Below are positions 7,391 to 60,962 of a stretch of DNA of 64,000 nucleotides, piece after piece. The translations under genes were made by a program, and so were the position numbers. The stretch covers positions 1 to 64,000 of the forward strand of contig NW_021836291.1 in assembly GCF_006345805.1 (NCBI RefSeq). The letters run 5' to 3'. This DNA comes from Octopus sinensis. Its lineage: Eukaryota. The notes under the pieces were generated by a model. That model searched no databases, was not told the origin of the DNA, and saw only the letters and a list, made by a program, of their open reading frames with translations. Each line of letters opens with the position of its first letter. The stretch's first letter is position 1.

Positions 7391-8401
7391 TATTATTATT
7401 ATTTAAGCCAAATAAAATCACCTTCTTAATCATTAACTAACACGTTCAGGTGATTCCAACACTTCTCAACAGTCGAGCCATCTTTTCACGATGTTCCGAC
7501 CGTGACCCCACACACTTTCTGTATGTACGGTGAATGGTTTGTGGTCCATTTCCACGATCCCCCCCATTTGCCTCTACGAGAGACTCCAGTGTTCTATGGA
7601 CAATTTCCCTATCGGTATGGTCCTTCAGAAGGTTGATGGATCTTTCTTGAATTTTTTCGATTTTTAGCCGATTCGTTGCCGCCAGGTTACAGCCCCAATC
7701 AGCACATGCATAGCCTATTGTTGGCTCGATATACTGCTTGTAAAGGGTCTCTACCCCTGGCGGATGAGTTCTCCCACAGTTCCAAAGGAAGGCTTTTACA
7801 AAATTGATCTTCTTTATACAGGTTGACACGATCGATTCTACGTGAGGTGAAAAACAGAGGAAAGTATCGAGCGTTACTCCCAATATCTTCTGAGTTTTCT
7901 TTTGTGGTATTGGAATTCCGTTCAACGTGACATCAATAGTTTTCGTCCCCATCTTCCTATTTTTCGTGAATAGAGTGACTGCCGACTTTTTGGAACATGC
8001 ATGTAGTCTGTTTTCATATAGCCATCCATATAAGTCGTCCAGTATTCTTTGTAGTCTCTCCTTCGCGTATTCGACATTTACATCCCTAGATGCGACAACT
8101 ATGTCATCGGCATAGGAGAGTAGTATGTCATTATTATCCATAGGAACCGGGAGATCATTCAGAAACAAGTTGAAGAGGGTCGGGGATAAAGGAGAACCCT
8201 GGGGTACACCATTGGGCAATAAGCGTGATCTTGAACTCTCGTTCCCGACGCACACTTTCCCACGACTCCGCTCAAAAAATTCGCTATCCATAGCTTCATA
8301 GGTGTAGGAATTTGTGTACCAAATATCTTTTGAATCTTCCTTGGGACTGAGTCAAACGCTTTTTGAATGTCGATAGTGCATACAATTGATTTCTCCTGCA
8401 A
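7391..8401 (-). mobile_element. 5'-truncated APE-type LINE: RT domain to 3' end with (TAA)n tail
   Basis: IDIQKAFDSV (frameshift) GVPQGSPLSPTLFNLFLNDLP...SYADD; stop at 7446; tattattatt tail at ~7391-7402; second copy of the 3' end at 48420-48668. Confidence 0.9.
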
Positions 8402-21312: not shown

Positions 21313-21714
21313 CAGGGCTGGCGGTGTTATTAGGAAATGTATACGGTACCAAGTTCTATCGAACGCTATAGTGTCTATTTTCAACAATTCCGTTGTAAAA
21401 AACGAAATTCCATCTCTTTGGAAAAAATCACGTATCATCCCGTTAATCAAACCGAACAAACCGGCTGGCATTCCAAGCTCATACCGCCCAATCTCTCTTT
21501 TGTGCACGCTATCTAAAATCCTCGAAAGACTAATCCTTTCACGAGTCTCGAAGCACTTACCAACATCCCACACCCAACATGGCTTCAAACCACTGCACTC
21601 AACAACCACTCACTTAACAACGCTTTCCCAGTTCGTCCTGGACGGCTTCAATGAGAAGAGGCCCCCTAAACGAACAGTTCTAGCTTCCATCGACATATCT
21701 AAAGCTTCCCAGAG
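21313..21714 (+). mobile_element. Internal RT fragment of an I/Jockey-like LINE flanked by a 10-bp direct repeat
   Basis: IFNNS...WKKSRIIPLIKPNKP...SYRPISLLCTLSKILERLI...QHGFKPLHSTT...IDISKA; aaggctcagt at 21303-21312 and 21715-21724. Confidence 0.85.
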
Positions 21715-22329
21715 AAGGCTCAGTAAACGTTACGGGTGCTTTTGGTTGGGTTTGGTAAATTTAGGATTTCATTTTTTAAAAAATTGTTGGATAATTTTAA
21801 GTTTAAAGATAGCTTTAAAATGGAACTTGAGAAAATCAAGACTTATTTTATATGGATAGAATTGATTAAACGGACGGTGACATTATTTAAATTTGTATTT
21901 AAAAATTGACCAGATTGACATAAACAAACTTTTTATAAAAACTTTGTTGGACATTTTTTTGATTAATCATTATTTTTAGACTAAAATCTAACTTTGACTT
22001 GAAATTGACTTTATTGATTTGTTTTGCCTTACTAATCAATAATTTTATTGAAAAAACACGGTTCGGGTTTGGAGCTGAAATGTTCCGGAAAATAAAGGAG
22101 CAAGTCGATTCTGAAAGACCAGTGAATGGATGTCATATGTATGTGCTCTTCGGGTTGGGTAATCGGCATTTTCTTGTTGCATTCCCAATTTGGATATTGC
22201 TTCGATGAAGTTTATTATTATTAAAAGCACTCCCGAGAAGTCATAAAACTAATTAAGCTTCCCTTGTGCCGCGTGAACAACAATACTGTTCCACAACCTT
22301 CTCCAGGTGCCTCTCCTCTTTGCCAATTT

Positions 22330-23778: not shown

Positions 23779-24496
23779 TTAGCAAGTGAGAGCGAAAGTG
23801 ACAACGTCGAACAATTCCTTGGGAAATGCTTTCTCGAATTCGTAGTTGAGCAGAGTGAGTCCTGCTTCCTGGAAAATGTCACAGAACGTGTTGAAAGAAC
23901 GAATAGCCGAGTTGTCCTCTTCGAGGAAGCAGTCGTCAGTGTAGTCCAGTCCGGCAGTGTTGTCCTTCACAATGACCACTCCACTCCCCGAGACAGTCCC
24001 GCACTCCACTCGCAACCCTCGTTTTATTCTCCTGAGAAAGCGGACGAAATCCCTTCTTAGCAAGTGGCCGGACACCCACTGCACCCACACAATGTCATAA
24101 CAATTCTCTTCCGGGGAAAAGTCTCGCAAGTTTGTGCAGAACGTTCTGATGACCCTCCTATAGTCCTGTTCTCCAATGTACAGTCGGGAATTGGAAATAA
24201 AGTCGGGAGTCATGTCGACGAGATCCACTTTCTGGCACATTGGCAGGAGGACGTGTTTGGAGACTCGTCCAATGCCTGCCCCACAGTCGAGTGCGTAGGA
24301 GAAGTAGTCATTGGGGAGGCATTCCTTATTCTCGAGACACTCAATGAACCGAATTGAGCTTTGGTGGTCGGTGTGTGCAATGAAGCCATACCCCCCCAAC
24401 ATGGACTCGATTGTGGGTTCTTTCGACTGGTAGTATTTCTTTATTTTGTCGTAGTGGGGGCTCACAACCTAACAGGAACACAACCCACCATACCAT
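23779..24496 (-). CDS. NTMT1: Alpha-N-terminal protein methyltransferase
   Basis: PTIESMLGGY...ALDCGAGIGRVSKHVL...YDIVWVQWVSGHL...VIVKDN...FPKELFDV..FAL; start inferred as an ATG-only exon (24494-24496) plus a 25-nt GTATGG..AG intron (24469-24493). Confidence 0.93.
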
Positions 24497-24501
24497 CACA
24501 A

Positions 24502-25857
24502 TTAATTAATTAATATAGTTTTTATATAAGCAATAACATCTCCATTTCCCAATATCCCTCGATGATCAATGCCGGGGAAAGCCTTGAGGGTGGCCCACGG
24601 ATGTCGTTGCTTACACTCCCGGAGACTGGAGAGGAGGACAGTGCCATCCCCGTCCGAGTAGTTCATGGTGGGGGAAGCAGGGAAGTGAGTCCAGGACTCG
24701 TATCTGTCCATGTCCGAATGCCTGTTCACCTGAGAGTAGCCAGCGTGTCTATTCCCTGCGAGTAAACACAATGCAGTTGGATATCCGAGGGGACCCTAAT
24801 CTGAGGGAGGACTGTCCTGTACAGTCGGAACATGTCCAGCATGGCATCCTTGTTGGGATCCTCCAGTTTCTAGAATGAGTGGTCGACGTACATTGATGAC
24901 CTCCACGTAATCATAGCTCGTATTGCCCACCCATACGGAGTCCTCGGTCGGGAAGAGTGCAAATGTGCTGGGAAATGTCCGGAGTGTGTCTCTGAATAAC
25001 TCGTCTTCCTTCAAATGGGCAAAGTTGACCCCTGAGTAATTGGGAAAGCAATACCAATGAGGACCCCTCTCAACGAAAGAGTGGACCCGTTGAAGGGGCC
25101 GGACACACTGATGAGTCGCCGAATATACTTCCTTCTCCACTCCACCGACCGACTCTCCAAAAAACGAGCAGAAAGCAAGCAGCCGTAGCTGTGGGCGAGG
25201 AGTGTGACGGGCCCAGAAGAGGAGTAACTAATCTCGACCAGGCGGGCCAGTCGGACAAACAATTCATCAAAGTTATCTAATGTGAGTACTCAGTCTAAAC
25301 CCAGTCCCAGTCGAAAGTCGAAGGGCACGCCGAGAATGTTGTCATTCCTCACGTAGGGGAGGACAGGCTTGTGGGAGACCAGTCCAGTTATGAACTGCGA
25401 GAAGTACCCCGTGAAAAAGTGGGCTGTCCTCATTGGGGAGGGAATACCAATGTACGAATCCCCCAGGAACTCCACCGAGTCCACATCCCCCAACTTCCCA
25501 GTCTTGATTTCCACGCCTGACTGATTGACGGGCAGTTGGAGGGATCTCGACCAGAGCAGTCTACAAGTCAGGCGAGTGGGATGCCTCAAGTTGTGGTGGT
25601 AGCATTTATCCACGATTGGCAGGAATGCGTAGAGGGACAGCCAGAGGAGGTAATAGTGCTTGGTCTTGGTTCTGCAGATACTGTACTTGTGGCCCGTCTG
25701 ATTCAGTTGGGCGTACAATTTGGAGCCCCCATCCCCGGGAACTATCACTGAGGAGGGGGAGGTCACCCAAGAAGAGGGGAGACAGTGTCCCATTCTGTCT
25801 TCCCGGCCTGCCCGAGGCTAAGGCAACCAAAAGTGTGGAAATTATGATAACAATCAT
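24502..25857 (-). CDS. PLA2G15: Lysosomal phospholipase A2 / LCAT-like lipase
   Basis: Signal peptide MIVIIISTLLVALA; LFLVPGDGGSKLYA; GVPFDFR; VTLLAHSYG (nucleophile); GDGTVLLSSL; GIDHRGIL; many mini-introns. Confidence 0.9.
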
Positions 25858-29913: not shown

Positions 29914-30240
29914 GGACTGTTTTGTCGACTCGTTTGTCCCTGATGATTATTCTGGCGACTGGGACAAACAAATGTGAGGATATTTTTATGCTATCTTTTG
30001 TGTGTGTATATTTTATTTGTCTTAATTAATTTTGATGGATTATCCTGATTTTGTATTCCTCTTCTCTGTCGTATTCTCTAGTCCTTTAATTACTATCGAG
30101 TATATTTAAGACACATGTTCACATTATTAAATGTAGTGAATTAATTATAATCAGTTTTCTATCAAATTACTCAATTGAATAATGATGCCACTAATCCGAT
30201 TATTCTCATTATAAAGAACAGATATGTTAATTTTTATGAT

Positions 30241-31007
30241 TTATGTTGGCTTTGCTTCTATTCTTATTTCCAAATGTGCGAATATTAAATGACGAATTAG
30301 CATTTTTCTGGACTGACTGCCACCGAGAAGCAACAGTTCCTCGATTCGCACAATCAGCGTCGAGCAATGGTCAACCCTTCTGCCACAAATATGCAGAGAA
30401 TGGTAAAAACAACTTGCACTGATCGTCAAGAAATGGGACCAGGGTTTGGAGGACATTGCGTTCAGTTCTGCCAGAACGTGTGTATTCGAACACGTGAACT
30501 CCGGAGAAAACATCCACTTTTCGACAAGTTTATTGTGAGAGTTGAGATTGCACAGAAAAGCCTGCTCCTGAAAAGATTGTATCCTCGTTCTACAATGAAT
30601 ACAAGAACTACAACTATTCTACTAATCAATGTGAAGCAAACAAGATGTGTGGTCACTACACACAAGTACTGATTATGTAATGGTAGGTCGTCTGGGCAAA
30701 ATCAGACAAACTGGGCTGTGCTACATATTTGTGTGAAAACATAGTCATTTCTGGCAAATACCATCAGGGGTATCTCACTTTCTGCAATTACTTGAGCTTG
30801 TTTGTTATTTTCTCCATTATGGGCACAGTGGGAACTACAAAGGCGTCCGACCATACATTCCTGGGCCCTCCTGCACTCAGTGTCCTTCTACTGCTCCATA
30901 TTGCATAGATCAACTCTGTTCAGGTTACTTTATCATTAGCCTTTTAGATAGTCGGGATAACAAGTCTTCTTTCAGAAATGCAGGAAGGTCCACAAATTGG
31001 TTATTCA
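30241..31007 (-). CDS. Hypothetical multi-exon gene (unassigned)
   Basis: Chain of exon-like frames (MNNQFVDLPAFLKEDLLSRLSKR; LIYAIWSSRR...; HVLAELNAMSSKPWSHFL) separated by short GT-AG segments. Confidence 0.35.
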
Positions 31008-31470
31008 TTGCAGTTTTTCTGTCACTCGTTGCTCTCTAACATCGCCCATAATTATTATTTTGGCCTAATTTAATTTTTCTTTCGATACACACTTTGAAAC
31101 ATTTGTCACCAATTTACAATACCAAAAGCAATTGAAAAAAAATTGAGTTTGAAGGGTTTTGTTAAAAAACCAAAATTCTATCGATAAATCACAACTTTAA
31201 GGGGGAATTCGATTGAAAAACCATTACAGCTCATTAAAAGTTGGTTTTATTTTCAAAATGAGTAAACTTTGATATGCAAATTCCACAAATCAGCTTAATG
31301 CCCAGAAACAGTCGAATACTTTTGTAGAACGAGGTCACTATTATCTGCTGACTTTTGTCTGTATGAGGATATTTGCAGATCGACCACTTAGTTTGCCTGG
31401 TAGAATACATAGAGTTATCACTATTCCTTGTTTGGAAAATAAATTTTAATTAATACATTAATTAAATAAG

Positions 31471-33579: not shown

Positions 33580-34054
33580 TAATAAAACATTTACTTGGGG
33601 ACTTTTCGATGTAGTTTCAGTCGATTTAGAATTTGAAATACTTTACTAAAACATTCACCTGTTAGATTTTCTGGTACATTTGTAGTTGTTTTTAGGATTA
33701 AAAATGAATTATAAAATTCAATAAACGAAGGAAAAGTTTGTTTTGCAAGATAATGCCAAATTGAGGCACTAACTGCACGCTTCTCCAGATTGTTTAATAA
33801 TCTTCCATTAATAAAAATTCAAAGATCATTTAAAAGTTACAATGGGGAATATCTGCGACAGTCAAATATCTTTATCCAATAATCTTATTCCCAAAAAGTT
33901 GCTTGATCGCAAAATGTTGTCGCACAGCCTACTTTATTAGTATCCGCCCAATCAGGCTAACAAATACGAAATAATTTTTACTTTCAAATACCGGTCACAA
34001 AAATAAAAACAAGAATTGGTTTCGTATTCAAATTTCTTACTTTCTTACTTTTCT

Positions 34055-35650
34055 GGAAAAAATCTGTTATCATTCCAATTCTGAGCCCAACAAAGACCCC
34101 TGCGACCCCGCTCATTCAGGCCAATCTCACTCATCTCTGTCCTATCAAAAATCTCGAAAAATTGTCCTGAATTCAATCTACCCTTTCCTCACTCTATCAA
34201 AGTCACAACATGGCTTCCGTCCGCAGCAACTCAAAAACTACACATCATCTTATCTAACAAGATTCATCGCAGACGGATTTAATAACTACTCCCCTCCCAT
34301 CGAACTATCCTGGCCTAAATTGATATCAGTAAGGCTTTTGACCGGACTTCACGACATGTCCTGAGCTCAAAAATCTACTCTTCTCTATTCCCATCATCTG
34401 AAAATCTGGCTGGGTAGCTTCTTCTGGTAGACTGGCTCAGACAAAATTCGGGTCAAAAAACTCCCGATTCCGCTACTTACCTAATGGGGTCCCTCAGGGG
34501 TCCTGTCTCTCTCCAGCCCTCTTCAATCTACACCTCAGTGATATGCCTACTAATTCGGAAACATTACTCCTCTCGTACGCTGACGACATAGTGATTGCTT
34601 CAAGAAAAAATTCCATCGAAGCTGCAACAAACTCACTTCAAGCTCTCTAGACTCTCTGACCAATGGCTAGGATCTAACCATATGACTCCTTCTGCGTCCA
34701 AATCGTCCATCACTGTTTTTACATCTGATAAAAGACAATTCAACCAAACCCAGTCCTCGATGTGGCCGGCGAAATAATTCCTGTCATAAAAAACCCGAAA
34801 ATTCTTGGAGTGTATTCGATCAATGCCTATCTTTCACGCAACACGTGGAGCTCATTTCCACCAAAGCCAAACGAAAATTGAATGCACTACGTGCCTTATC
34901 TGGACAACTTACGGCCAAGCCAAAGAATGCCTCACTTTGGTTTACAAACAATTTGTCAGAACATCTATGAACTATGCTAGTCCAGCATGGTCATGGAACT
35001 TGTCTCATTCAAACCTCCAAAAACTCCAAAGAATCCAAAACTCAGGGCTACGCACAATAACTGGCTGCCTTGCATCCACTCCCATCGATCATCTTCATTG
35101 GGAGTCCTGTATCCTTCCGGTCGATGACCATTTGACGATGAGAGGACTCCAATTCCTACAGGAAATACAAGATTCTTCTCATCCAAGTCACAAAATCTCT
35201 ATTCCAGAAAACAAAAGACACATCATTTCTACTCTGGCCGATCAATGTAGATGTCTATCAAAAATACTCTCAACCAACAATGGGAAAACTGCGAATAAAC
35301 TAATCCATGACCACATCTCCACTCGTGCTATCAGGATGCTCAAAAACAACAAACTTCTCAACTCTCCCCCCCCGCCGGTCCACTCCTCAGAGCAATCACT
35401 CGGCAGATATCTCCGTGTCCAGCTTGCTCAGATTGTGTCCAGCTTGCTCGGGACATCATCCACTGATTTTTGAAACTACCGTTCCTTCACCCCCGAAGAC
35501 CTCTTCCCCTGTCCTGGACCGCCTCACTTCTCCGCCTATTGGGATTCGGGATCTCTGGGAGCGCCCGATCTTCGCGTCTCGCTACCTGATTGCAGCCGGC
35601 TTCCTACGTTGTTAGTGAAGCCGGGGTAACATAACTAACTAACTAACTTT
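34055..35650 (+). pseudogene. 5'-truncated I/Jockey-like LINE RT pseudogene with (TAAC)n tail
   Basis: KKSVIIPIL...RPISL...QHGFR...DISKAFD...GVPQGSCLSPALFNL...SYADD...LVYKQFVRTSMNYASPAW; several frameshifts. Confidence 0.9.
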
Positions 35651-36582
35651 CATCAAAAAATTTGTATCATCTTTTCTCATCTTGAAATTAATTTCAGTTA
35701 ATTTCACCTGCTGAGAAACAATGCTTCCTGAGGAATGTTTATATTCCATATTGCAATTCTGGGTCACGTTTTGCAGCTTCTTCTAATGTTTCGTTCCATC
35801 CCTGCTGTCGTTTTTATTATTCATAACCAGAATCAACATATTTGATGCGGCTGGGCTGACGCTGAAACAATACTTGTTATGTCATTTAAAAACTGCTTTT
35901 GAATACTTTGCGAAGTGACTAACTAAATCTTTAAGTAAACTTCATACAATATTGTGGAACAAAGCTACAAAGAACAGCATTTACTGTATTCCGATAATTC
36001 ACTTTTTATATTCTGGAATGAAAAAAGTTATTTGTACTAAAAAAGGATAGTTCTTAAATGACTTTTTATAAAAGACTATAAAATTTATTTATTCATTTCG
36101 TTGTTTTTTATTCTTTGTTAAATGTAGTAGCGCAGAATGAGACATATTTTCCTCATCATAATTTTATTTTGCAATCATAATCTTATTTACAAATTAAATT
36201 GGTTTCTGGCCGAGTAAATTGAAAAAGCGATATAAATTATGAAAATTATAGAAAAATAATAAAATTACTTGACAATGTGGGATGTCATAAAATCATGGAA
36301 TGCTCAAATATTGAGTTTTATTTTTGTTGAAAAATGTAACACCTTATCTCGAACATTAGATATGAGATCAATCAAGACTTTTAAAGATTGTTACTCCAAT
36401 TATCTTGTTCAGTTTTTGTGTTTTCAAGATGATGAAAATGAATTTAAACGATCGATTAACAAAATACTCCTTCGTCAGGTAGTCATCAGAAATTAATGTT
36501 GGGAAGATATGGTAGACAATCAAGAATCAGCTCAAGCAGGTTAGCACGTGATCGTAGGTTCATAAGGATGTGATATGATTAA

Positions 36583-38046: not shown

Positions 38047-39765
38047 ATGGTTAAGTCTCAATCCAATGCATTCGACAAAACTACCAATAACAACGGTAAA
38101 ACTACCAACTAATGCATAATATACCACAATATATATTACCCCCACATAGTTCACTCGCACCCCACCACACAAAACTACTCGGAGCCAAAAAGTCTGCACG
38201 ACTGGGGAGTCTCCGAGGCAGTTTCTGATGTCTTTCAGCCCTTTTTTAACTCAGGTTTAAAATCTCGGACAAAACCACTCAGGGAGGCTGAAATTCTCCG
38301 AATTCGACGCTCGGGCGATCGACGCCTTCAAAAGTCTAAGTCAGAGGGACGCGGAGGACATTTCGGCGTGTTTCGAAGCCAGCGACCTCTCGCACATCTC
38401 GAACAAGAGTGCCCACCTGTGCACGTCCATCCGGCTCGTGCGGGACAGGAGAAAGAACAACGTCAGTCTGAGCAACACGGAGGTGTTCAAACCCGACGAG
38501 CAGAAGATGGAGGCCATCATCCGACGGACTGGCTACCCCTACGAACGCACGTCCGGCCAGCGGAAATATGGCCCGCCTCCCAACATGACGGACATCCCGG
38601 CCGCCAACGGACACGAGATCTACATTGGGTCGATCCCCTACTCGGTGTGTGAGGACACGTTGATCCCCATGATGGAGAAATGTGGCACTATCTACGACCT
38701 CCGAATGATGGTGGATGCCGCCACTGGACGGAACAAGGGATTCTGTTTTGTGACCTTCGTGGAGGACGACGCCGTGGACATTGCAGTCAAGAAATACAAC
38801 GGAGTGGAATTGAAGGCGGGAATGAAGATACGAGTGAATCCTTCCATCCCTAACCTCAAATTGTCGTTGTCCAATCTGCCTATGAATAAGGAGGCGAGTG
38901 AGTTGATGGAGGAGTTCAATAAGTTGTTGGATGGAGTGCTGAATGTGGAGTTGACGGGGCCTGGTTGTTGTACAATCCACTTTGATCGACACAAGAATGC
39001 TTCCTCCAGCAAAAGAAAGTTGTTTACTGGGCGAGTGAGGCCGTTCGACCAGTTGGTGGGGGTTGACTGGTTTGTGGTGAATGAGGAGAACGGGGAGGAG
39101 GATGTCAAGGTGTTGTTTGTGAGGAATATTGACGCGGACATGTCTGATGCTGAATATTCGGATATTTTCAGCAGATTTGGCAGTGTTATGCGGATAAATC
39201 GTTTTACTAATCATTTATTCGTTCATTATGTTGACCGAAAGGCAGCAGAGAAGGCACTCGGCAAAATGGATAAGAAGGTGGTGTTTGTCGACATGTCCTA
39301 GTTTGTGGGCAGTCGGGAAATTGAGGTGTCCTTCGCTCGATGTCAAAACAAGAAGGAACGACGTGACAAACAGCAGTCTCGGCACTCCGGGTGTGTGTCT
39401 TATTTAATCCCAGTGTCTCTTATTTCGACAATTCAATGTTTTTGGGGGGGAATTCCAATGGCTTCTACCAGATTCCCTCATTCTTCCAAGCGGATGGATC
39501 AGTGTCGACGATTCCAATGGCCCCGATTGCGGGGATAATTCCTGACTGTTATTACTTCCCTTCCGATCCCTACTGGATGTACGACCCTGCCACTAATGGG
39601 TCGACTGTCCCCCTGATTACTCACTTTTATGACTGTTACGGTGTGCCTCACCAATATGTGTATCCTCCATTCCTCGTCAGTGGGGATGTGCCTGTTAATG
39701 GGGAGAGAGACGGGACTGTCGAGGAGTCTGGACTCAATCCAGGTTGTGTGGTCTTGTTAGTTTAG
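38047..39765 (+). CDS. SYNCRIP: hnRNP Q/R (SYNCRIP-like) RNA-binding protein
   Basis: NURR domain (FDARAIDAF...SDLSHISNKSAHLC), TSGQRKYGPP, three RRMs (IYIGSIP, RNKGFCFVTF, VKVLFVRN), Tyr/Pro-rich tail; mini-introns; 3' end approximate. Confidence 0.92.
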
Positions 39766-40346: not shown

Positions 40347-41994
40347 TTATCAAATTTTGTGTGGAGCTAGCTCCTGCGGAGGCCCTGCTCGCTACGCTCG
40401 CAGTTTCCTTAAATAACTATAAATTTATGTAGATATATAAATGCGACCTGCTTTGATATAACCTTATTCTAAGGCCTGTGGATAAACGATGTCTGTGGAT
40501 AAACGATGTCCATCCTTGGCAAATATAAATAAATTTCTCTTCTACCTACCCTTGAGCACCCCACATACAGCTGGCCATGTGAAAAGCACTCGTTCTCTAA
40601 AAATAAGCCTACTACCTTTAAAGACTGTCCCTGGGCCTTGTTTATTGTCATAGCAAAACTTATCTTCAGCGGAAATTGTAGTCTCTTAAATCTATCGCAG
40701 GCCCTTTCATGGTCCATAATAACGTCGACCGATTTATATATTCTTTCTCTGCCAGGGATTTTCATTAATAAATCTAAATTTATATTAAGTACCTCATCAT
40801 TAAGTGGAGCTAATATAGCTCGTTCACGCAGCCAGTCGAAATTCACGTAGTGTTCAGATAGTTCGGAATAGACGGCATTCAATAATTCTTCTGCTGTTTC
40901 TACGAAAATACATAATTCTTCCGGTAGCCTAATTTTCTGGTCGTGCATTTCTGAAGTGATTGCCCCATTTCCAATATCTAGAAGGATTTGTGGGAATATG
41001 CTATTAACGCCTTGTAAATGTGCATGTACATTTACATCTAAGCTAACCTTTTTCACGTGTGTCCACAAATATGACGATTTGAGGCAGGCATTCAATTCAT
41101 CCGCTGGCGTCCCTCTTTGAATAATTGGCAGCGTCTGTCTAAAATCACCTGCCAATACAACCAATGCTCCCCCAAACAAATGGTCGCTACAATTCTTGAT
41201 ATCTCTATATGTTCGGTCAACTGCTTGAATGCGCCTTTATGAGCCATCGTACATTCATCCCAAACAATTAACCTAGAATGCATAATTCTATTACCCGTAG
41301 TTGAGTCTAACAGCAGTCCTGACCTTGTTCAGCTGTTGTCTAAGTTCCCTCACCATTTAAGCACATCTTCCCTCGTTTCTCTTTTTTGTTATATGGTTCA
41401 TATTCTCTTGTTTGTTAACATTCTCAGATCTCTCTTTATAGGACATTCTTATGATTTTGTAAACGCGAATCAGTAATTTATATTAAATTTTCTACGTAAA
41501 TTTATTTAGTGAAATTTATGTAAAGTGTATTATCCAATCAAAGCCATTATACTTAATTGCCTCTATGTTTAAAGGAATTGAAACTTTAGCATAATCGAAC
41601 TTGTCTGTTTCGGTAAAGAAAATGATAATCAGCTTCATCTTTGTAGTATTATAAGGAAAAAAATTAAAGCCTGTTAAATCAAGGAGATTTAAATATAGGC
41701 AAATTGAAATTTACATGACTAATTTAAATTTTATTTGCCTCTATCTTTTAAGAAATCTAAACAGTAGCATAATCGAATTTGTCAGTTTCGGCAGTTAAAA
41801 AGAATCAATTATGTAAATCTCTAATAATTTTTGCTTTTTCCTTTTTAGTGGTTTTCAAAATCTGATAATTGCACAGTATATTCATGGTCGATAACAATTA
41901 GAGCTTTTATTTTATTTTTTTAACGAAAATTTAACAAAAAAGAATTTATGTCATCGAAAAAAGATAGCTAAGCTAATTAATGGCCTCACGAGGC

Positions 41995-43348
41995 TTGAAG
42001 GTTGTGGAGGACCTCATCATGTGAGTCGAGGACTTTCTTGTCGTTCATTTTAACAAAAACGCAGAAAATAATTTTTTTAATTTTTTAGCTTGAAGGTTTT
42101 GGGGGACCACATCATGTGAGTCGAGGACTTTCTTGTTGTTCATTTTTACAAAAACGCAGAAAATAATTTTTTTTAATTTTTTGGCTTGAAGGTTTTGGGG
42201 GACCACATCATGTGAGTCGAGGACTTTCTTGTTGTTCATTTTTACAAAAACGCAGAAAATAATTTTTTTTAATTTTTTGGCTTGAAGGTTTTGGGGGACC
42301 ACATCATGTGAGTCGAGGACTTTCTTGTTGTTCATTTTTACAAAAACGCAGAAAATAATTTTTTTAATTTTTTAGCTTGAAGGTTTTGGGGGACCACATC
42401 ATGTGAGTCGAGGACTTTCTTGTTGTTCATTTTTACAAAAACGCAGAAAATAATTTTTTTTTTTAATTTTTTGGCTTGAAGGTTTTGGGGGACCACATCA
42501 TGTGAGTCGAGGACTTTCTTGTTGTTCATTTTTACAAAAACGCAGAAAATAATTTTTTTAATTTTTTAGCTTGAAGGTTTTGGGGGACCACATCATGTGA
42601 GTCGAGGACTTTCTTGTTGTTCATTTTTACAAAAACGCAGAAAATAATTTTTTTTAATTTTTTGGCTTGAAGGTTTTGGGGGACCACATCATGTGAGTCG
42701 AGGACTTTCTTGTTGTTCATTTTTACAAAAACGCAGAAAATATTTTTTTTAATTTTTTGGCTTGAAGGTTTTGGGGGACCACATCATGTGAGTCGAGGAC
42801 TTTCTTGTTGTTCATTTTAACAAAAACGCAGAAAATATTTTTTTTAATTTTTTTGCTTGAAGGTTTTGGGGGACCACATCATGTGAGTCGAGGACTTTCT
42901 TGTTGTTCATTTTAACAAAAACGCAGAAAATAATTTTTTTTAATTTTTTGGCTTGAAGGTTTTGGGGGACCACATCATGTGAGTCGAGGACTTTCTTGTT
43001 GTTCATTTTTACAAAAACGCAGAAAATAATTTTTTTTAATTTTTTGGCTTGAAGTTTTGGGGGACCACATCATGTGAGTCGAGGACTTTCTTGTTGTTCA
43101 TTTTAACAAAAACGCAGAAAATAATTTTTTTTAATTTTTTGGCTTGAAGGTTTTGGGGGACCACATCATGTGAGTCGAGGACTTTCTTGTTGTTCATTTT
43201 AACAAAAACGCAGAAAATAATTTTTTTAATTTTTTAGCTTGAAGGTTTTGGGGGACCACATCATGTGAGTCGAGGACTTTCTTGTTGTTCATTTTAAAAA
43301 AACGCAGAAAATTGACTTGAAGGTTTTGGGGGACCTCATCATCGAGGA
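41995..43348. repeat. Minisatellite, ~96-bp unit x ~14, inside the Helitron
   Basis: catcatgtgagtcgagg recurs 14 times from 42015 to 43259; units differ mainly in T-run length. Confidence 0.97.
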
Positions 43349-43480: not shown

Positions 43481-43530
43481 GGGTGTGCACAGACAGACAG
43501 ACAGACACACAGACAGACAGACAGACACAC
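43481..43530. repeat. (ACAG)n/(AC)n microsatellite near the Helitron 5' end
   Basis: acagacagacagacagacacacagacagacagacagacacacac seen directly. Confidence 0.9.
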
Positions 43531-43639
43531 ACCATACCATTTTATTATTAAGATTATGCCAAAGTCACGAGCCATTCATCTACTTTCATTCCGAATGCTC
43601 ATCTTCGCGGAAATTACGAATTTAGCTACCACCATACGC

Positions 43640-44789: not shown

Positions 44790-45600
44790 TTACTGCTGAA
44801 TGAAAAGTGTCGCTATTAGAACAACGACAACTTTAATGAGACCGACTCCTTTAATATTTTTATTTAACAGATATACTTGCTACATATTTGGAGTTTTCTT
44901 CTGTTACTTTAGTCGTCATTTCACTTGGCTTTGCATTGAGGTCGAATGATTTGTTCTCAGTAATATAATTTTGCGTAGTTGTGACTGTCTTTGTGCTATT
45001 TTCTTTATTGACAACTTTCGTGAGACCAACGGCTTCAATATTTTAATTTAACAGATATACTTGTTACATATTTGGAGTTTTCTTCTTTTAGTTTAGTCGT
45101 CATTTCACTTGGCTTTGCATTGAGGTCGAATGATTTGTTCTCAATAATATAATTTTGCGTAGTTGTGACTGTCTTTGTGCTATTTTCTTTATTGACAACT
45201 TTCGTGAGACCAACGGCTTCAATATTTTAATTTAACAGATATACTTGTTACATATTTGGAGTTTTCTTCTTTTAGTTTAGTCGTCATTTCACTTGGCTTT
45301 GCATTGAGGTCGAATGATTTGTTCTCAATAATATAATTTTGCGTAGTTGTGACTGTCTTTGTGCTATTTTCTTTATTGACTGATTCGGCAGCCATGGCCT
45401 CAAGTTTCTCATCCCATTTCTTTGAAGTATATTTATGCCATATTACCATTTTTAGCATATCAGCAGCTAAAGGGTTTGCGATTGATCGATATTTGTTGTG
45501 TGCATCCAAAAAATTTTTTCGGTCCTCGGGTGAAACGAGAAACTAAAACCATGAATAAACGAATTACAATATTGTGAAATAACATCAGAAAAGCAAACAT
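44790..45600 (-). CDS. Secreted/GPI-anchored protein: truncated CAP (SCP) N-terminus + 3 Thr-rich repeats + hydrophobic tail (224 aa)
   Basis: Exons 45600-45568, 45542-45447, 45419-45245, 45216-45061, 45032-44877, 44848-44790 give 675 nt in frame; FLDAHNKYRSIANPLAADMLKM|KWDEKLEAMA is the CAP start; tail VGLIKVVVVLIATLFIQQ*. Confidence 0.75.
44829..45378. repeat. 184-bp tandem repeat x3 (156-nt exon + 28-nt intron unit)
   Basis: acaactttcgtgagacc at 45011 and 45195; degenerate copy at ~44828. Confidence 0.95.
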
Positions 45601-45919
45601 TTATTGAATTAAAAAAAAATAGTTTTTATATTCAAATATGACGCGTAAATGACTGCTTGTTGTACTCCAAGGTTTTATTGCTGACGTCGTTTTTTGTTTA
45701 ATTACAATAATTGATCTAATGTGGGTTTTTAATGTGAATGACTCCGACATTGTTTAATGTGATAAAGACGGACGCTTTAAATTCTTGAGAAAGTTATTTT
45801 TGTTTGTTACATCTATGAAAATAGAGTGAACAAAAATAAAAACTGAACATGCTTTTTCTCATAAATTTACAATGGGACAATGTTGAAAATATGTCTCAAA
45901 TTTATTCTTAACATAGATT

Positions 45920-46015
45920 AAAGTATTCTAAATATCGAATTGCTAACATGGCCTGCACAAAGCCCAGATTTAAACCCTATAGAGAATGTTTGGGCCTTTA
46001 TTAAAAAAATCAAAG
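45920..46015 (+). mobile_element. Tc1 transposase remnant
   Basis: IELLTWPAQSPDLNPIENVWAFIKK. Confidence 0.75.
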
Positions 46016-46475: not shown

Positions 46476-48400
46476 TCCAACTCGGGGTCGGCGTGCCTGG
46501 AGGATGTGAATCTGCTGTTCATGCTATCCGCACTTCCTCAGAAGCGTGCAGGAAATCACAATGTCCAAACATTCTGATCAAGCTTGACATCAGAAATGCA
46601 ATGACAGAGTCTTAGAGGCCTGCTCTGAGTATTGTCCTTCCTTATTCGGGCTCGCTTTCCAATCATACGGCCAACCATCTTCCCTTATCTTTGATTCCGA
46701 CACTATCCCGTCTGCTTCGGGAGTCCAGCAGGGAGACCCTCTGGGGCCACTTCTTTTCTGTCTTGGAATCTCCGAGGTGACCAAGCTTCTATCTTCTCCA
46801 TTAAATCTCTGGTATCTCGACGACGCCACTCTCGGTGGCCCTCCGGACATTGTCCTGCAGGACATAATTAAAATCATCCCGGCTCTGGAGAAAATCGGCC
46901 TCATTTTAAATTCCTCCAAATGTGAAATTTCCAACCTCGGATGCTCGCAATCTATTTTCGAAGACGCTGTTTCCTCTTTCTGCGATCTTATCCCGGGAGT
47001 TCAATCTACTCCCATTGACGAACTTTTTATCCTCGGAGCCCCGGTAGCTGGCAACTCTATCGATGTGGCCCTACGCAAAAAAGAACTTTTCCTCGAAGAA
47101 GCTTTTGATCGTATCAGACAGCTGGACTCGCACACTGCATTATTCCTCCTACGGAATTGCTTTTCGATCCAAAAGCTCTCCTATCTGCTTCGCTCTTCTC
47201 CGTGTTTTGATTTTTCAGAGAGGCTTTCAGCCATTGACCTTCTTATTAGCACTTGCACTCAGAACGTATGCAATTCCCCTTTCGACGACATGGGTTGGAG
47301 ACAGGCAATCCTACCGTTATCTTTTGGAGGGCTCGGCATCCGTTCATGTTCCGACCTATCGTTGCCTGCTTACCTCTCTTCCGTCTCCGCGAGCCACACA
47401 CTTGTCATGGAAATTCTACGCTCCTTCCCTGAATTTTCCTCGGACACAAATGTGGCTCATTTCAGCGAAGTCTGGAGAGAACAAGGTCTTGACTTTCCGG
47501 AAGAGCGAATGTCTCAACGAGCCTGGGATCGAATTAGATGCAAGCAAACTTTTAATCTGCTCTCGAGTCGTCCAACCAGCACCGCCGCGCTTGCCTTCTG
47601 TCGGCAGCATCCCCGGCTAGCGGAGCTTGGCTTTGTGCATTCCCGAACGCCCCATCTGGCACTCTCCTTGACGATGAAGCGGTAAGGATCGGAGTCTCTC
47701 TGCGACTCGGACTAAGGCAATGTGTCCCGCACACGTGCCGCTGTGGCTGCACTGTTGACCCTTTCGGTCTGCACCCTTTATCGTGCAAGAGGAGTGCCGG
47801 ACGTTTCCCGAGGCACTCTGCTATGAATGACATCATACGGAGGGCCCTCGACTCGGCGGGATTTCCTTCGGTTCTCGAACCACCGGGCCTTGATCGCGGC
47901 GACGGGAAACGTCCTGACGGGATGACCCTATTCCCCTTTGAAGGCGGAAAAGGCCTCGTATGGGACGCAACCTGCTGCGACACCTTTTCTGCTTCTCACT
48001 TAACTTCGTGTGCTCTGGAAGCCAAATCCGCAGCTAAGAAGGCTGAAGATTTAAAGCTTTTAAAATATTCTGCCCTCTCGGAGAGGTTTTCCGTGGTGCC
48101 GATCGCGGCGGAGACGTCGGGTGCTCTCGGTCCAAAAACCGAAAAGTTCCTTCGCAAGCTCGGAGCCAAAATCTCAATGCGCACCCATGATCCTCGAGAG
48201 GCGAACTGGCTAATGCAACGGCTCTCGATTACCATTATCCGGGGAAACAGTTTGGCAATCCGCCAGGCTACATATCCACCATAAACATAATACAGTCTAA
48301 CCCCGGGGTGGGGCACCAAAGTGCCCCAAAAACCGGGGGTGCCCTTCCAAACAGGGGTCTAGTTCAAACTATTGAATTATAGTTCATTTAACTTAAATTT
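46476..48400 (+). mobile_element. CRE-clade non-LTR retrotransposon, RT + CCHC + RLE, 5'-truncated
   Basis: QLGVGVPGGCE...KLDIRNA; GVQQGDPLGPLLF; WYLDD; GGLGIR; CRCG..VD..GLH.LSC; KRPDG...LVWDATC...KY..L...PIAAETSG...QRLSI.I.RGN; frameshift ~47565; stop 48284. Confidence 0.92.
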
Positions 48401-49074: not shown

Positions 49075-49495
49075 CATACTAAATAGGATTAACACCAAAC
49101 TAAGTGGGACTAGCAGAAAACTAAATGGGATTAGCAGAAACTAAGTAGGATTAACCTTCAAACTAAGTGGGACTAGCAGAAAACTAAATGGGATTAGCAG
49201 AAACTAAGTAGGATTAACCTTCAAACTAAGTGGAATTAACGTCAAACTAAATGGGATTAGCAGAAAACTAAGTGGGATTAACGTCAAACTAAGTGGGATT
49301 AGCAGAAAACTAAGTAGGATTAACCTTCAAACTAAGTGGGAGTAATTTGCGTGGGAACAGCTGTTCCATTCGGCTTGCTGGCAGATTAATTTCTGATTAA
49401 TTTAACTTTCCTATTCTTCAAAAAAAGCTATAATCTTTAAAAAAAAAGTGGGAGTAACATCAAACTAAGTGGGATTAACGTCAAACTAAGTGGAT
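49075..49495. repeat. Left subterminal array of ~22-bp units (aactaagtgggattagcagaa variants)
   Basis: Seen directly; mirrored in inverted orientation at 50565-50730. Confidence 0.9.
49346..49445 (+). mobile_element. 100-bp retroposed insertion with A-rich tail and 12-bp TSD
   Basis: aagtgggagtaa at 49334-49345 and 49446-49457; the insert ends in an A-run and contains the palindrome ggaacagctgttcc. Confidence 0.7.
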
Positions 49496-50744
49496 TACGT
49501 TTATTATAAACATTATATTTCGACGCAGCAAATAAAAATGCCACGTAAATCATTGGAAGAGAAAAATCAAATGCATAGAAGTAGAATACATTTAATTTCA
49601 GCTGCAGAATCAGGTAGAGATTGGAAAAAAACAGCACTTGAACTCAATATCTCGAGAACAACAACATATCGTTGGATAAGGGATGGAGTTAAACCTGACA
49701 CGAGAGGTGGAAATTATAGAAAAAAGTTTGACAAAAAACATGTCGACTTTTTTATATCATGCATTGAAGACGATAGCACACTTACCCTTCATGGAATAAA
49801 AAGAAAATTTAAATTAGTTTTTCCAAAATTATCAATATCAAAATCAAGTATCGCTCGACATCTCGATCTAAGTTTGTATACATTAAAGAAAGTGAGATTC
49901 GAGCCGGAAAAAGCTAATTGTGAAATTCACAAAATCAAGAGAAAGGAATTTGTTGAATCGGAAAACAGACAAATTTGCTTTATGGATGAATCAAACTTTA
50001 ATCTCTATATCAGCAGGACAGAAGGAAGATCGCTAAAGGGAACAAGATGCACTACTCTAGCGGCTGCATCAAAAGGGTCGAATGTACATATAATTGGATG
50101 CATCTCAAATCTAGGACTCATTTACTATGAAATCCGAAGGGGAGCTTTTAAAAAAGAGCAGGCTTGTGATTGGATGAAAATTTGTTTGAGGCAAGCACGG
50201 ATTAAACATGGTGGTCCAGTTATTATAGTGTTGGACAATCCACCAGCTCACGTGGTATCGAAGAAGTTTTTCGATTGGAAAAATTTAATGATTTTCACAT
50301 TCTTCGTCTCGGTCCGTACAGCCCAATGCTTAACCCCATCGAAAATGTATGGTCAAAAGTAAAAGCTCACGTGAAAAGAGACATCGCTTCTAAAAAAACC
50401 AAATTTTATTCCAACAAGGAGAAGGCTTGTCAATTAAAGAGCATCGAAACGGATACTTGAACAAATAATTGTAGATAGAATGATAGAATGAAACAAATAT
50501 TGCCGACACACTAAATATGAAATTAAAAAAAAAATTTTTTTGTGTTAATTCAATTTAGTTTGCTATTAATCCCATATTGTTTGGTATTAATCTCACTTAG
50601 TTTGATGTTAATCCCATTTAGTTTTATGCTAATCCCACTGAGTTTTCTGCTAATCCCACTTAGTTTGATGTTAATCCCACTTAGTTTTCTGCTAATCCCA
50701 CTTAGTTTTGGTGTTAATCCCATTTAGTATGGGAAATGGTATCA

Positions 50745-60242: not shown

Positions 60243-60962
60243 TCACAAAAAAGCACAAAAGTCCACATTGTGACGGGCCAGTCTCAAATCGAGTACATTT
60301 TTGACAATTCTGCTGTGGAGAGCCAGTTTGGAGTCGTCGTGCAAGTCCCACACACTTTCGGGGACCTCAGTCTCCTCTGCGGGGACATTCACCGTGAAAA
60401 TGAAGGCCGAGTTGGGCACGGCGTAGTTCTCGTGGTCACACCAAGTGAAGAACAATTCCAAGACCGACGACCCAAACTCGGAAATGTCAGCAAACACATT
60501 GACACGTGAAATATTGATGTGAGAGGAGGGGGGGTCGAACACACTGGCCGAGGGGGAGAGCACTCGGGCTATTCTGGTGGCCACGCACTTGGAGAGGGCC
60601 TTCCCCGTCGACTGGTCGTACACAATCATCAGCACTGCAGGCTCTGCACGGGCCGGGTCGTGGAAATGTCGGATGAACGACTTGATGGTCGGTTTGAGCA
60701 CATTTGGCTTGGAGGAGTCCACCAGCAAATCCAATTCCTCCATCAATTTCGAGATTTCTCCACTTTTGACTGGATTTGAGGCTCTGTGTGTGAGGTAGAC
60801 GTCCAGGCCGACGAGAATGAGCACCGTAAATGACAAAAACCAATTCATTCTGCGAGCACACCTCACTCGCTCGTAGCGAATTAAACGGCAATTCGTCCTG
60901 CCTGCATTCCTCAGTTGGGCACTTTCTAATCACATCACTATTATTATCTCACTAGCCACCAT
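60243..60962 (-). CDS. TOR1AIP: Torsin-interacting protein (LAP1/LULL1-like luminal domain)
   Basis: TM helix then EPAVLMIV...FFTWCDHENYAVPNSAFIFTV...KLALHSRIV (arginine-finger motif); start inferred via a 27-nt intron near 60926-60952. Confidence 0.82.

Follow-up and report, generated by a model that had tools for sequence, protein, structure and literature searches.

A truncated CAP gene with a triplicated exon-plus-intron unit on a probably dicyemid scaffold of the Octopus sinensis assembly

The locus and its CAP-family neighbours

The 64-kb window considered here, i.e., the whole stretch of DNA that was analysed, is the first 64 kb of VCDQ01001777.1, an unplaced scaffold of 482,653 bp in the Octopus (O.) sinensis assembly GCA_006345805.1; the positions given here are also those of the scaffold record. 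A tblastn search of this window with the product of a truncated CAP gene (referred to as T) revealed two relatives, an intact paralogue (A) at a distance of 14 kb from T and a copy (C) located between them (Table 1). The model of T, which is encoded on the minus strand, was rebuilt by script from the reverse complement and is composed of six exons and five introns; all junctions are of the GT-AG type and the product has 224 residues. A six-exon, 224-residue frame had been proposed earlier from the sequence alone, and that proposal was found to be exact, with GT-AG junctions at each of the positions that it named. An in-frame stop codon is found immediately 5' of the ATG in exon 1, and the start codon, the 224 codons and the ten splice sites are all free of disabling lesions. 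On the opposite strand of the locus, open reading frames (ORFs) do not exceed 65 residues and none of them has a Pfam match, and a search of the entire window against Rfam gave no match.

Table 1. Positions of the truncated CAP gene (T), its tandem array, its relatives (A and C) and one further ORF in the 64-kb window
Feature	Position	Strand	Length	Description
T, entire gene	44790..45600	-		Truncated CAP gene
T exon 1	45568..45600	-	33 nt	ATG at 45600-45598; MFAFLMLFHNI, start of the hydrophobic N-terminus
T intron 1	45543..45567	-	25 nt	GT-AG
T exon 2	45447..45542	-	96 nt	FLVSPEDRKNFLDAHNKYRSIANPLAADMLKM; beginning of CAP helix 1
T intron 2	45420..45446	-	27 nt	GT-AG; in frame and stop-free; position common to A and C
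T exon 3	45245..45419	-	175 nt	End of the CAP stub (KWDEKLEAMAAES), then first Thr/Lys/Asn-rich unit; repeat from 45380
T intron 3	45217..45244	-	28 nt	GT-AG; phase 1; in-frame TGA
T exon 4	45061..45216	-	156 nt	Phase 1/1; second unit
T intron 4	45033..45060	-	28 nt	GT-AG; same sequence as intron 3
T exon 5	44877..45032	-	156 nt	Phase 1/1; third unit; four non-synonymous differences from units 1/2
T intron 5	44849..44876	-	28 nt	GT-AG; 2 differences from introns 3/4
T exon 6	44790..44848	-	59 nt, including stop	RVGLIKVVVVLIATLFIQQ; hydrophobic tail; repeat unit extends 20 nt into this exon
T stop codon	44792-44790	-		TAA
Tandem array in T	44826..45380	-	184 bp x 3.0	97% matches, no indels (TRF)
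Paralogue A	30224..31039	+		Intact CAP gene; introns of 28/28/21/29/24 nt; GPI-like tail ending ..NAGRSTNWLFIAVFLSLVAL
Copy C	35980..33888	-		CAP pseudogene; 3' limit about 33888
NTMT1-like ORF	23779-24465			Matches a window-encoded 144-aa protein

Dinucleotide shuffles were used to estimate the chance of finding such open frames. For the 156-nt exon, the required frame remained open in 2.8% of the shuffles and any frame in 8%, while the 360-nt non-duplicated coding sequence of T is open in 0.025%, a figure that ignores the freedom in the choice of splice sites. The repeat exon has a single open frame, and its two other frames are crowded with stop codons.

Two stretches of the product are hydrophobic, i.e., residues 1-15 (Kyte-Doolittle values of 1.8-2.2), as had been read from the sequence, and residues 204-222. 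The N-terminal stretch is not preceded by a basic n-region. The C-terminal tail is short, with 11-16 hydrophobic residues and a Lys among them, and it offers no ideal omega site; the candidates (S and A) are associated with poor omega+2 residues. By the usual rules, the tail of A, in which NAG is followed by 13 hydrophobic residues, is predicted to be a good GPI-type signal and a better one than that of T. A hydrophobic tail had also been noted earlier, and it is of a type carried by A and by PI16-like relatives. Six N-glycosylation sequons are found in the product, NST at residues 61, 113 and 165 and NKS at residues 76, 128 and 180.

Paralogue A matches the Pfam CAP profile with an E-value of 6.5e-16 over profile positions 1-108 and contains all core motifs as well as the conserved cysteines. 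Its best database matches are a sturgeon-type PI16 (42% identity) and GLIPR1-like proteins (36-39%). The first exon of this gene is uncertain and comprises either 21 nt, followed by a 56-nt GT-AG intron, or 54 nt, followed by a 23-nt GC-AG intron. No gap interrupts the alignment of A with its database matches at four of its five exon junctions; the fifth is located just outside the aligned region, and this uninterrupted homology across the junctions validates the use of mini-introns in this genome.

Copy C is disrupted in several ways. Its exon 2 is 95 rather than 96 nt, which results in a frameshift, there are in-frame stop codons, the HYTQ motif has decayed to RYLK, and the copy is split by about 1.7 kb of foreign, reverse-transcriptase-like DNA. 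As read from the alignments, eight of the 11 invariant N-terminal residues are found in C, while R30, M43 and D46 are lost. Both C and T have a 33-nt exon 1 (encoding MLFFVALFHNI and MFAFLMLFHNI, respectively) followed by a 25-nt intron 1. All three copies harbor an intron at the same site, after "..M" and before "KWD/WNE", and the last intron is in phase 1 in T and A alike. These common intron positions lend good support to the descent of T from a GLIPR1/PI16-like gene, an origin that the sequence-only reading had suggested. At the DNA level, comparison of the T locus (±1 kb) with the remainder of the window gave matches of only 14-37 bases, none with an E-value below 0.006. Hence, T was not recently copied from A or C; because the three copies show no similarity at the DNA level, the duplications that produced them are old and T is an old member of the CAP cluster.

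Probable origin of the scaffold

Taken together, A and T contain ten introns of 21-29 nt. In dicyemids the median intron length is 27 bp (PMC6543705), and among animals introns as short as these have been reported for Dicyema and myxobolid myxozoans only (PMC13644364). The renal sac of O. sinensis is the habitat of Dicyema japonicum, whose genome has a GC content of 36.7%, with 49% repeats including LINEs (PMC6736024). The GC content of the window is about 38%, and the window is rich in transposon remnants, which include reverse transcriptase, a Tc1/mariner-type DDE_3 domain and a PIF1-like helicase domain that may be Helitron-derived. The proteins encoded in the window are very divergent. For the NTMT1-like ORF, the next best matches after the window-encoded protein, at 40%, are those of a sea star and mites, and no cephalopod protein is found among the matches listed.

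The short introns, the divergence of the proteins and the cephalopod host together indicate that the scaffold is very probably dicyemid DNA that was carried into the assembly of the host. A parasite setting had been proposed for the gene from the sequence alone, and a dicyemid is the likely form of that setting. For users of the assembly and its annotation it matters that at least 482 kb of this widely used octopus reference, in the form of one scaffold, probably derive from a parasite, and this observation may be of more practical use than gene T itself.

The CAP stub and the tandem repeat

Residues 23-65 of the T product match positions 1-38 of the 117 positions in the Pfam CAP profile (PF00188), with a score of 23.7 bits (cut-off 21.1) and an E-value of 9.1e-5. 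In a six-sequence alignment of the family, all 11 invariant N-terminal positions are retained in T, and the CAP N-terminal motif kept is FLD.HN.YR...P.A..M..M.WD..L...A. The product is devoid of the GENL, HYTQ-VVW, VGCA and CNY motifs and of any cysteine. Remnants of the missing core were sought with a CAP profile derived from A together with 19 homologues, which was run with filters off against all open stretches of at least 8 residues in six frames. The matches were confined to the exons of A, the fragments of C and the stub of T; no remnant of the core (GENL, HYTQ, VGC) was detected in or near the T locus, and nothing else matched within kilobases of T. The core is therefore gone rather than hidden, and the truncation of the CAP domain that had been read from the sequence is supported by both the Pfam match and the profile search. 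Weak tblastn matches at 44235-44117, considered as a possible CAP remnant, are noise (E 44).

The CAP tetrad is composed of two His and two Glu residues. Both His positions fall in the absent part of the domain, and the only possible tetrad Glu residues in T are E75 and E95, which are placed there by an alignment that is not significant. Lacking both core and tetrad, T does not qualify structurally as a CAP-domain protein; a 45-residue stub cannot adopt the CAP fold.

Downstream of the stub, the stretch that extends to the tail exon has been amplified by two 184-bp tandem duplications with breakpoints in the neighbouring exons. Each 184-bp unit is equivalent to one 156-nt phase-1/1 exon and one 28-nt intron, and in terms of register it runs from the 3' 136 nt of an exon through the 28-nt intron into the 5' 20 nt of the exon that follows. 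The three copies of this unit, which had been recognized before, are seen both with TRF and in an alignment of the copies. Units 1 and 2 are identical at all 184 bases, while unit 3 differs at 11 of 184. The array starts directly after ..GCCGAATCA|GTC, and its other end, within the tail exon, is ..AAAGTT|GTC, so that the junction has a GTC microhomology. The unspliced unit is not a multiple of three nucleotides and its intron carries an in-frame TGA; since each duplication added a 156-nt exon together with a 28-nt intron, splicing of the mini-introns is required to maintain the reading frame. The three internal splice junctions share phase 1, which allows 156-nt exons to be gained, lost or skipped without any change of frame.

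The identity of units 1 and 2, base for base, and the unplaced, probably contaminant nature of the scaffold could be taken to mean that the copy number, or the locus as such, is an assembly artefact, e.g., a mis-expanded repeat in a long-read assembly or a chimaeric join. Such an artefact is highly unlikely, given that the array is free of indels and in clean register, that it is flanked by unique sequence and that the divergence of copy 3 makes at least two units real.

In the product, the array corresponds to three units of 52 residues that are rich in Thr, Lys and Asn and contain two sequons each; the occurrence of both NST and NKS in every unit agrees with what had been noted previously. 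The unit VNKENSTKTVTTTQNYIIENKSFDLNAKPSEMTTKLKEENSKYVTTVGLTKV contains 19.5% Thr, 14.8% Lys, 12.1% Asn, 10.1% Glu, 8.1% Ser and 2% Pro. As a rule of thumb, mucin-like repeats combine Ser/Thr with Pro and have a content of Ser plus Thr of roughly 40% or more. With 27.5% Ser plus Thr and 2% Pro, the repeat of T is not a mucin by composition, and the term "mucin-like" used in the sequence-only reading does not hold for a unit in which Lys, Asn and Glu are abundant. An AlphaFold prediction from the single sequence of exon 3 alone yielded two helices with a pLDDT of 77 and a pTM of 0.34, which constitutes weak evidence.

Searches for relatives of the product were made in several collections. The whole 224-residue product had no match at E ≤1 in a word-indexed database of 5.8 billion clusters. 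In an exhaustive HMMER pass over 1.84 billion representative proteins with a contiguous-frame query of 107 residues, the repeat unit had no relative and the real matches involved only the CAP stub, which is similar to a 6xCAP protein from Octopus vulgaris (45%) and to a 2xCAP protein in ENA (49%). A third match in this pass is an artefact in which the alignment covers the translation of the retained intron 2, and a fourth is an artefact caused by a low-complexity bacterial repeat. Neither the T ORF nor a neighbouring RRM ORF is recorded in public assemblies according to an exact look-up, and no gene call or matching protein for T was found in public collections. This lack of a public protein says little about T because intact A has none either.

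The repeat unit could also be regarded as a degenerate CAP segment, bounded by the GENL loop and the "W..E...Y" helix, such that a half-domain has been triplicated, a view that is compatible with either a working or a decaying gene. Alignments with HMMER and MAFFT do set IIENKSF under GENl and KEENSKY under nE..dY at a spacing within the range of the family, and E75, N76, E95 and Y99 then fall in invariant columns. However, shuffled units score as well in 154 of 1000 cases when the anchor is kept and in 241 of 1000 when the unit is used alone, i.e., the similarity is not significant; the three EN dipeptides in the unit make chance matches easy, the Pfam alignment ends at profile position 38, and an intron that A has in this segment would have to have been lost. 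Because 15-24% of the shuffled units score equally, this explanation was not adopted and we consider it quite unlikely.

A working gene or a young pseudogene

Gene T retains exon 1, exon 2 and the first 13 codons of exon 3 of the family, together with the intron positions and the terminal exon that encodes the hydrophobic tail. It is best described as a CAP-derived stub-and-stalk gene. We view T as a lineage-specific derivative of a small GLIPR1/PI16-like cluster whose CAP genes are membrane-tethered, in a genome that is most likely that of a dicyemid of O. sinensis, and the structural and evolutionary parts of this explanation are held with high confidence.

In the simplest reading, the ancestral gene would have been laid out like A. 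An internal deletion would then have joined codon 56, in exon 3, to sequence preceding the last phase-1 intron, which would have left a signal peptide, a stub of helix 1, a spacer of 45 residues (the stalk), an intron and the tail exon. A first 184-bp duplication, with its ends in exon 3 and the tail exon, then created a new internal exon, and after about 6% divergence a second, very recent duplication gave rise to the two identical units; the duplications are evident from the sequence, whereas the deletion is inferred. In the product, the N-terminus would direct the polypeptide into the ER, where up to six Asn sequons may be N-glycosylated, possibly along with clusters of Thr. The tail may be exchanged for a GPI anchor or may serve as a short membrane span at the cell surface, and the repeats could act as a spacer that keeps the small helical stub at a distance from the membrane or as a plain hydrophilic coat. 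Each unit carries its own intron, which would allow the number of units to be altered by unequal crossing-over; alternatively, the number in the product may shift through skipping of the symmetric exons. The variable length proposed in the sequence-only reading is a prediction from a single assembly.

The intact frame and the five canonical introns, which are in the size range of the homology-verified introns of A (21-29 nt), support T as a gene. The layout of signal peptide, CAP domain, linker and hydrophobic tail in A and PI16-like relatives, together with the hydrophobic ends of T, is consistent with a membrane-tethered product. Whether T is a working, expressed gene is, as judged from its sequence, an evenly balanced matter.

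The substitutions that separate the repeat copies bear on this question. Unit 3 differs from units 1 and 2 by seven non-synonymous and two synonymous changes, corresponding to an omega of 0.95; with these nine changes only, values of omega ≤0.2 are rejected (p = 0.035) while a value of 0.5 is not. Five of the nine coding changes are located within the 20 nt that lead into the tail, where the role of the sequence is different. The divergence between the copies in the exon, 9/156 (5.8%), equals that in the intron, 2/28 (7.1%). Fast-evolving surface proteins can display a substitution pattern similar to the neutral one. An omega near 0.95 and equal exon and intron divergence make a young decaying relic a serious rival of the working gene. 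According to this alternative, T is a young, unprocessed pseudogene in which a deletion broke the CAP domain, the 184-bp duplications arose from neutral slippage or unequal crossing-over, and the frame is open merely because too little time has elapsed. The identity of copies 1 and 2 indicates that the last duplication was very recent, neighbour C is clearly dead, the surroundings of T are rich in transposons, one third of random duplications of such a kind would be expected to remain in frame, and the repeat unit is without a homologue in any of the databases searched; all of these observations fit a pseudogene.

They have to be weighed against the lesion-free start codon, reading frame and splice sites of T, the preservation of all 11 family-invariant N-terminal residues as compared with eight in C, and the retention of both hydrophobic termini. 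The open frame counts for little in this respect, because over about 6% divergence only about one stop codon would be expected by chance (a rough estimate); as the truncated layout is only about 6% neutral divergence old, an open frame could persist in the absence of selection. The sequence-only reading had named an intact CAP paralogue as a finding that would mark T as an unexpressed, decayed duplicate. An intact paralogue does exist, in the form of A, but its presence alone is no proof that T is unexpressed. On balance, a pseudogene is a real possibility, although we incline against it.

The layout of the gene has known parallels. The vertebrate tethered CAP proteins PI16, GLIPR1 and GLIPR1L1 have the same layout as A, i.e., signal peptide, CAP domain, linker and hydrophobic C-terminus. 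PI16 and GLIPR1L1 are GPI-anchored. T differs from these proteins in that it has only the first third of the profile and a linker composed of the triplicated 52-residue unit. In helminths, the VAL/ASP genes are members of the CAP family that form tandem clusters in parasites and are often secreted or located at the surface. The VAL proteins keep a complete CAP domain, in contrast to T. In Saccharomyces cerevisiae, Pry3 is composed of a signal sequence, a CAP domain, an S/T-rich region and a GPI signal, and a natural transcript of the gene encodes the S/T-rich part without CAP; this CAP-less form is inactive in a mating assay (PMC7340583). Apart from being fungal, Pry3 differs from T in that its S/T region is longer than 600 residues and in that its CAP-less form is produced by alternative transcription, whereas that of T results from truncation of the gene.

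A parallel to the repeat is found in the SmPoMuc mucins of Schistosoma mansoni, where the tandem unit is an exon with its flanking intron, the frame is kept and the copy number varies (PMC2576457). SmPoMuc resembles T in having a genomic repeat of exon plus intron with a frame-keeping exon, and it is a parasite glycoprotein that encounters a mollusc host. The two are not homologous, and SmPoMuc is a true mucin with demonstrated expression and polymorphism, its unit of about 1 kb containing a 27-bp exon and occurring in as many as about 20 copies, while in T the unit is 184 bp with a 156-nt exon in three copies. In its overall layout T resembles the PI16/GLIPR1L1 and Pry3 type (signal, CAP, S/T linker and lipid anchor), and in its repeat mechanism it resembles SmPoMuc.

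A more specific proposal is that T encodes an expressed, fast-evolving, dicyemid-specific surface glycoprotein at the contact with the renal epithelium or urine of the octopus, derived from a CAP gene reduced to signal peptide, short helix, glycosylated stalk and lipid anchor, with a stalk that would vary in length between individuals or species as units of exon plus mini-intron are gained or lost; at present we consider this rather unlikely. No mention of CAP, GPI or mucin genes was found in the dicyemid genome and expression studies searched. Should T be expressed at the host contact, it would be the first candidate host-interface molecule for Dicyemida. If it is a pseudogene, the locus is an unremarkable instance of birth and death among the members of a small gene family. 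In genomes with introns of 25-30 nt, a unit of exon plus intron is small enough to expand in the manner of a minisatellite while the frame is kept. If expressed, T would illustrate how a folded CAP ectodomain can give way to a surface protein with a simple repeat stalk.

The CAP genes and the protein nearest to the T remnant

The gene with the truncated CAP domain and the triplicated repeat unit (T) carries an N-terminal CAP remnant, for which a HMMER search of 1.84 billion representative proteins returned a nearest protein with 49% identity. In this 435-aa protein, two CAP domains are accompanied by Ser/Thr linkers, and the tail is hydrophobic (coordinates of this and all other features are listed in the table).

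The first intron of the intact paralogue, A, is either a 56-nt GT-AG intron, with seven codons in the exon ahead of it, or one of 23 nt with GC-AG ends; this second choice yields a much better signal peptide, MLIFMIYVGFASILISKC. A stretch of reverse-transcriptase-like DNA, ~1.7 kb long, interrupts the pseudogene C. In the block 34001-36000, the GC skew is unusual at -0.28.

Features of the window and the nearest protein to the T remnant
Feature	Position	Strand	Remarks
Reverse-transcriptase fragment	7446-8291	-	Pfam support
RT-like ORF	21371-21859	+	RT likeness by eye only
NTMT1-like methyltransferase	23779-24465	-	
LCAT/PLA2G15-like fragment	25290-25793	-	
A, intact GLIPR1/PI16-like CAP gene	30224-31039	+	five mini-introns; good GPI-type tail
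C, CAP pseudogene	33888-35980	-	exon 2 short by 1-nt deletion; several stops; HYTQ motif degraded
Protein with two RRM domains	38438-39301	+	resembles hnRNP-Q/R by eye
PIF1-like helicase fragment	40469-41179	-	Pfam support
95-bp satellite	41992-43312		13.8 copies, 97% identity; 1.5 kb downstream of T
(ACAG)n run	43488-43531		
Mariner-like remnant	45900-46000		..WPAQSPDLNPIENVW..
Long ORFs beyond the remnant	46777-48284	+	without Pfam matches
21-bp subrepeat array	49078-49341		
Tc1/mariner-type ORF	49490-50362		DDE_3 and HTH domains
21-bp subrepeat array	50539-50728		opposite orientation to the other array
LAP1_C-like ORF	60243-60866	-	weak
Nearest protein to T remnant	L002 10001-11308		gene without introns; ENA ERZ25067582, contig ctg12235_25x_l (1.2 Mb)

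Neighboring genes and mobile elements

Four housekeeping-type, host-independent genes (the NTMT1-like, LCAT/PLA2G15-like, two-RRM and LAP1_C-like entries) adjoin the CAP cluster. The GC content reaches 50% in the 24-26 kb block.

On its upstream side, T is bordered by the mariner-like remnant, which starts ~300 bp from the start codon, and therefore the space for a promoter is only ~300 bp. The long ORFs beyond this remnant may derive from a retroelement. The two 21-bp subrepeat arrays on either side of the Tc1/mariner-type ORF look like long terminal inverted repeats composed of short direct repeats, and the PIF1-like helicase fragment is possibly Helitron-derived. This helicase fragment and the two RT-type sequences listed in the table are in line with the description of the Dicyema genome as rich in repeats (PMC6736024).

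Origin of the scaffold

The window constitutes positions 1-64000 of the 482,653-bp contig VCDQ01001777.1 of the Octopus sinensis assembly GCA_006345805.1. Because the introns of its genes are only 21-29 nt long and its proteins display only ~40% identity to any named animal protein, the scaffold is, as judged from sequence, probably DNA of a dicyemid parasite inside the host assembly. VCDQ01001777.1 is on record under two samples, and the second record may be the RefSeq copy; if so, the octopus annotation could include parasite genes.
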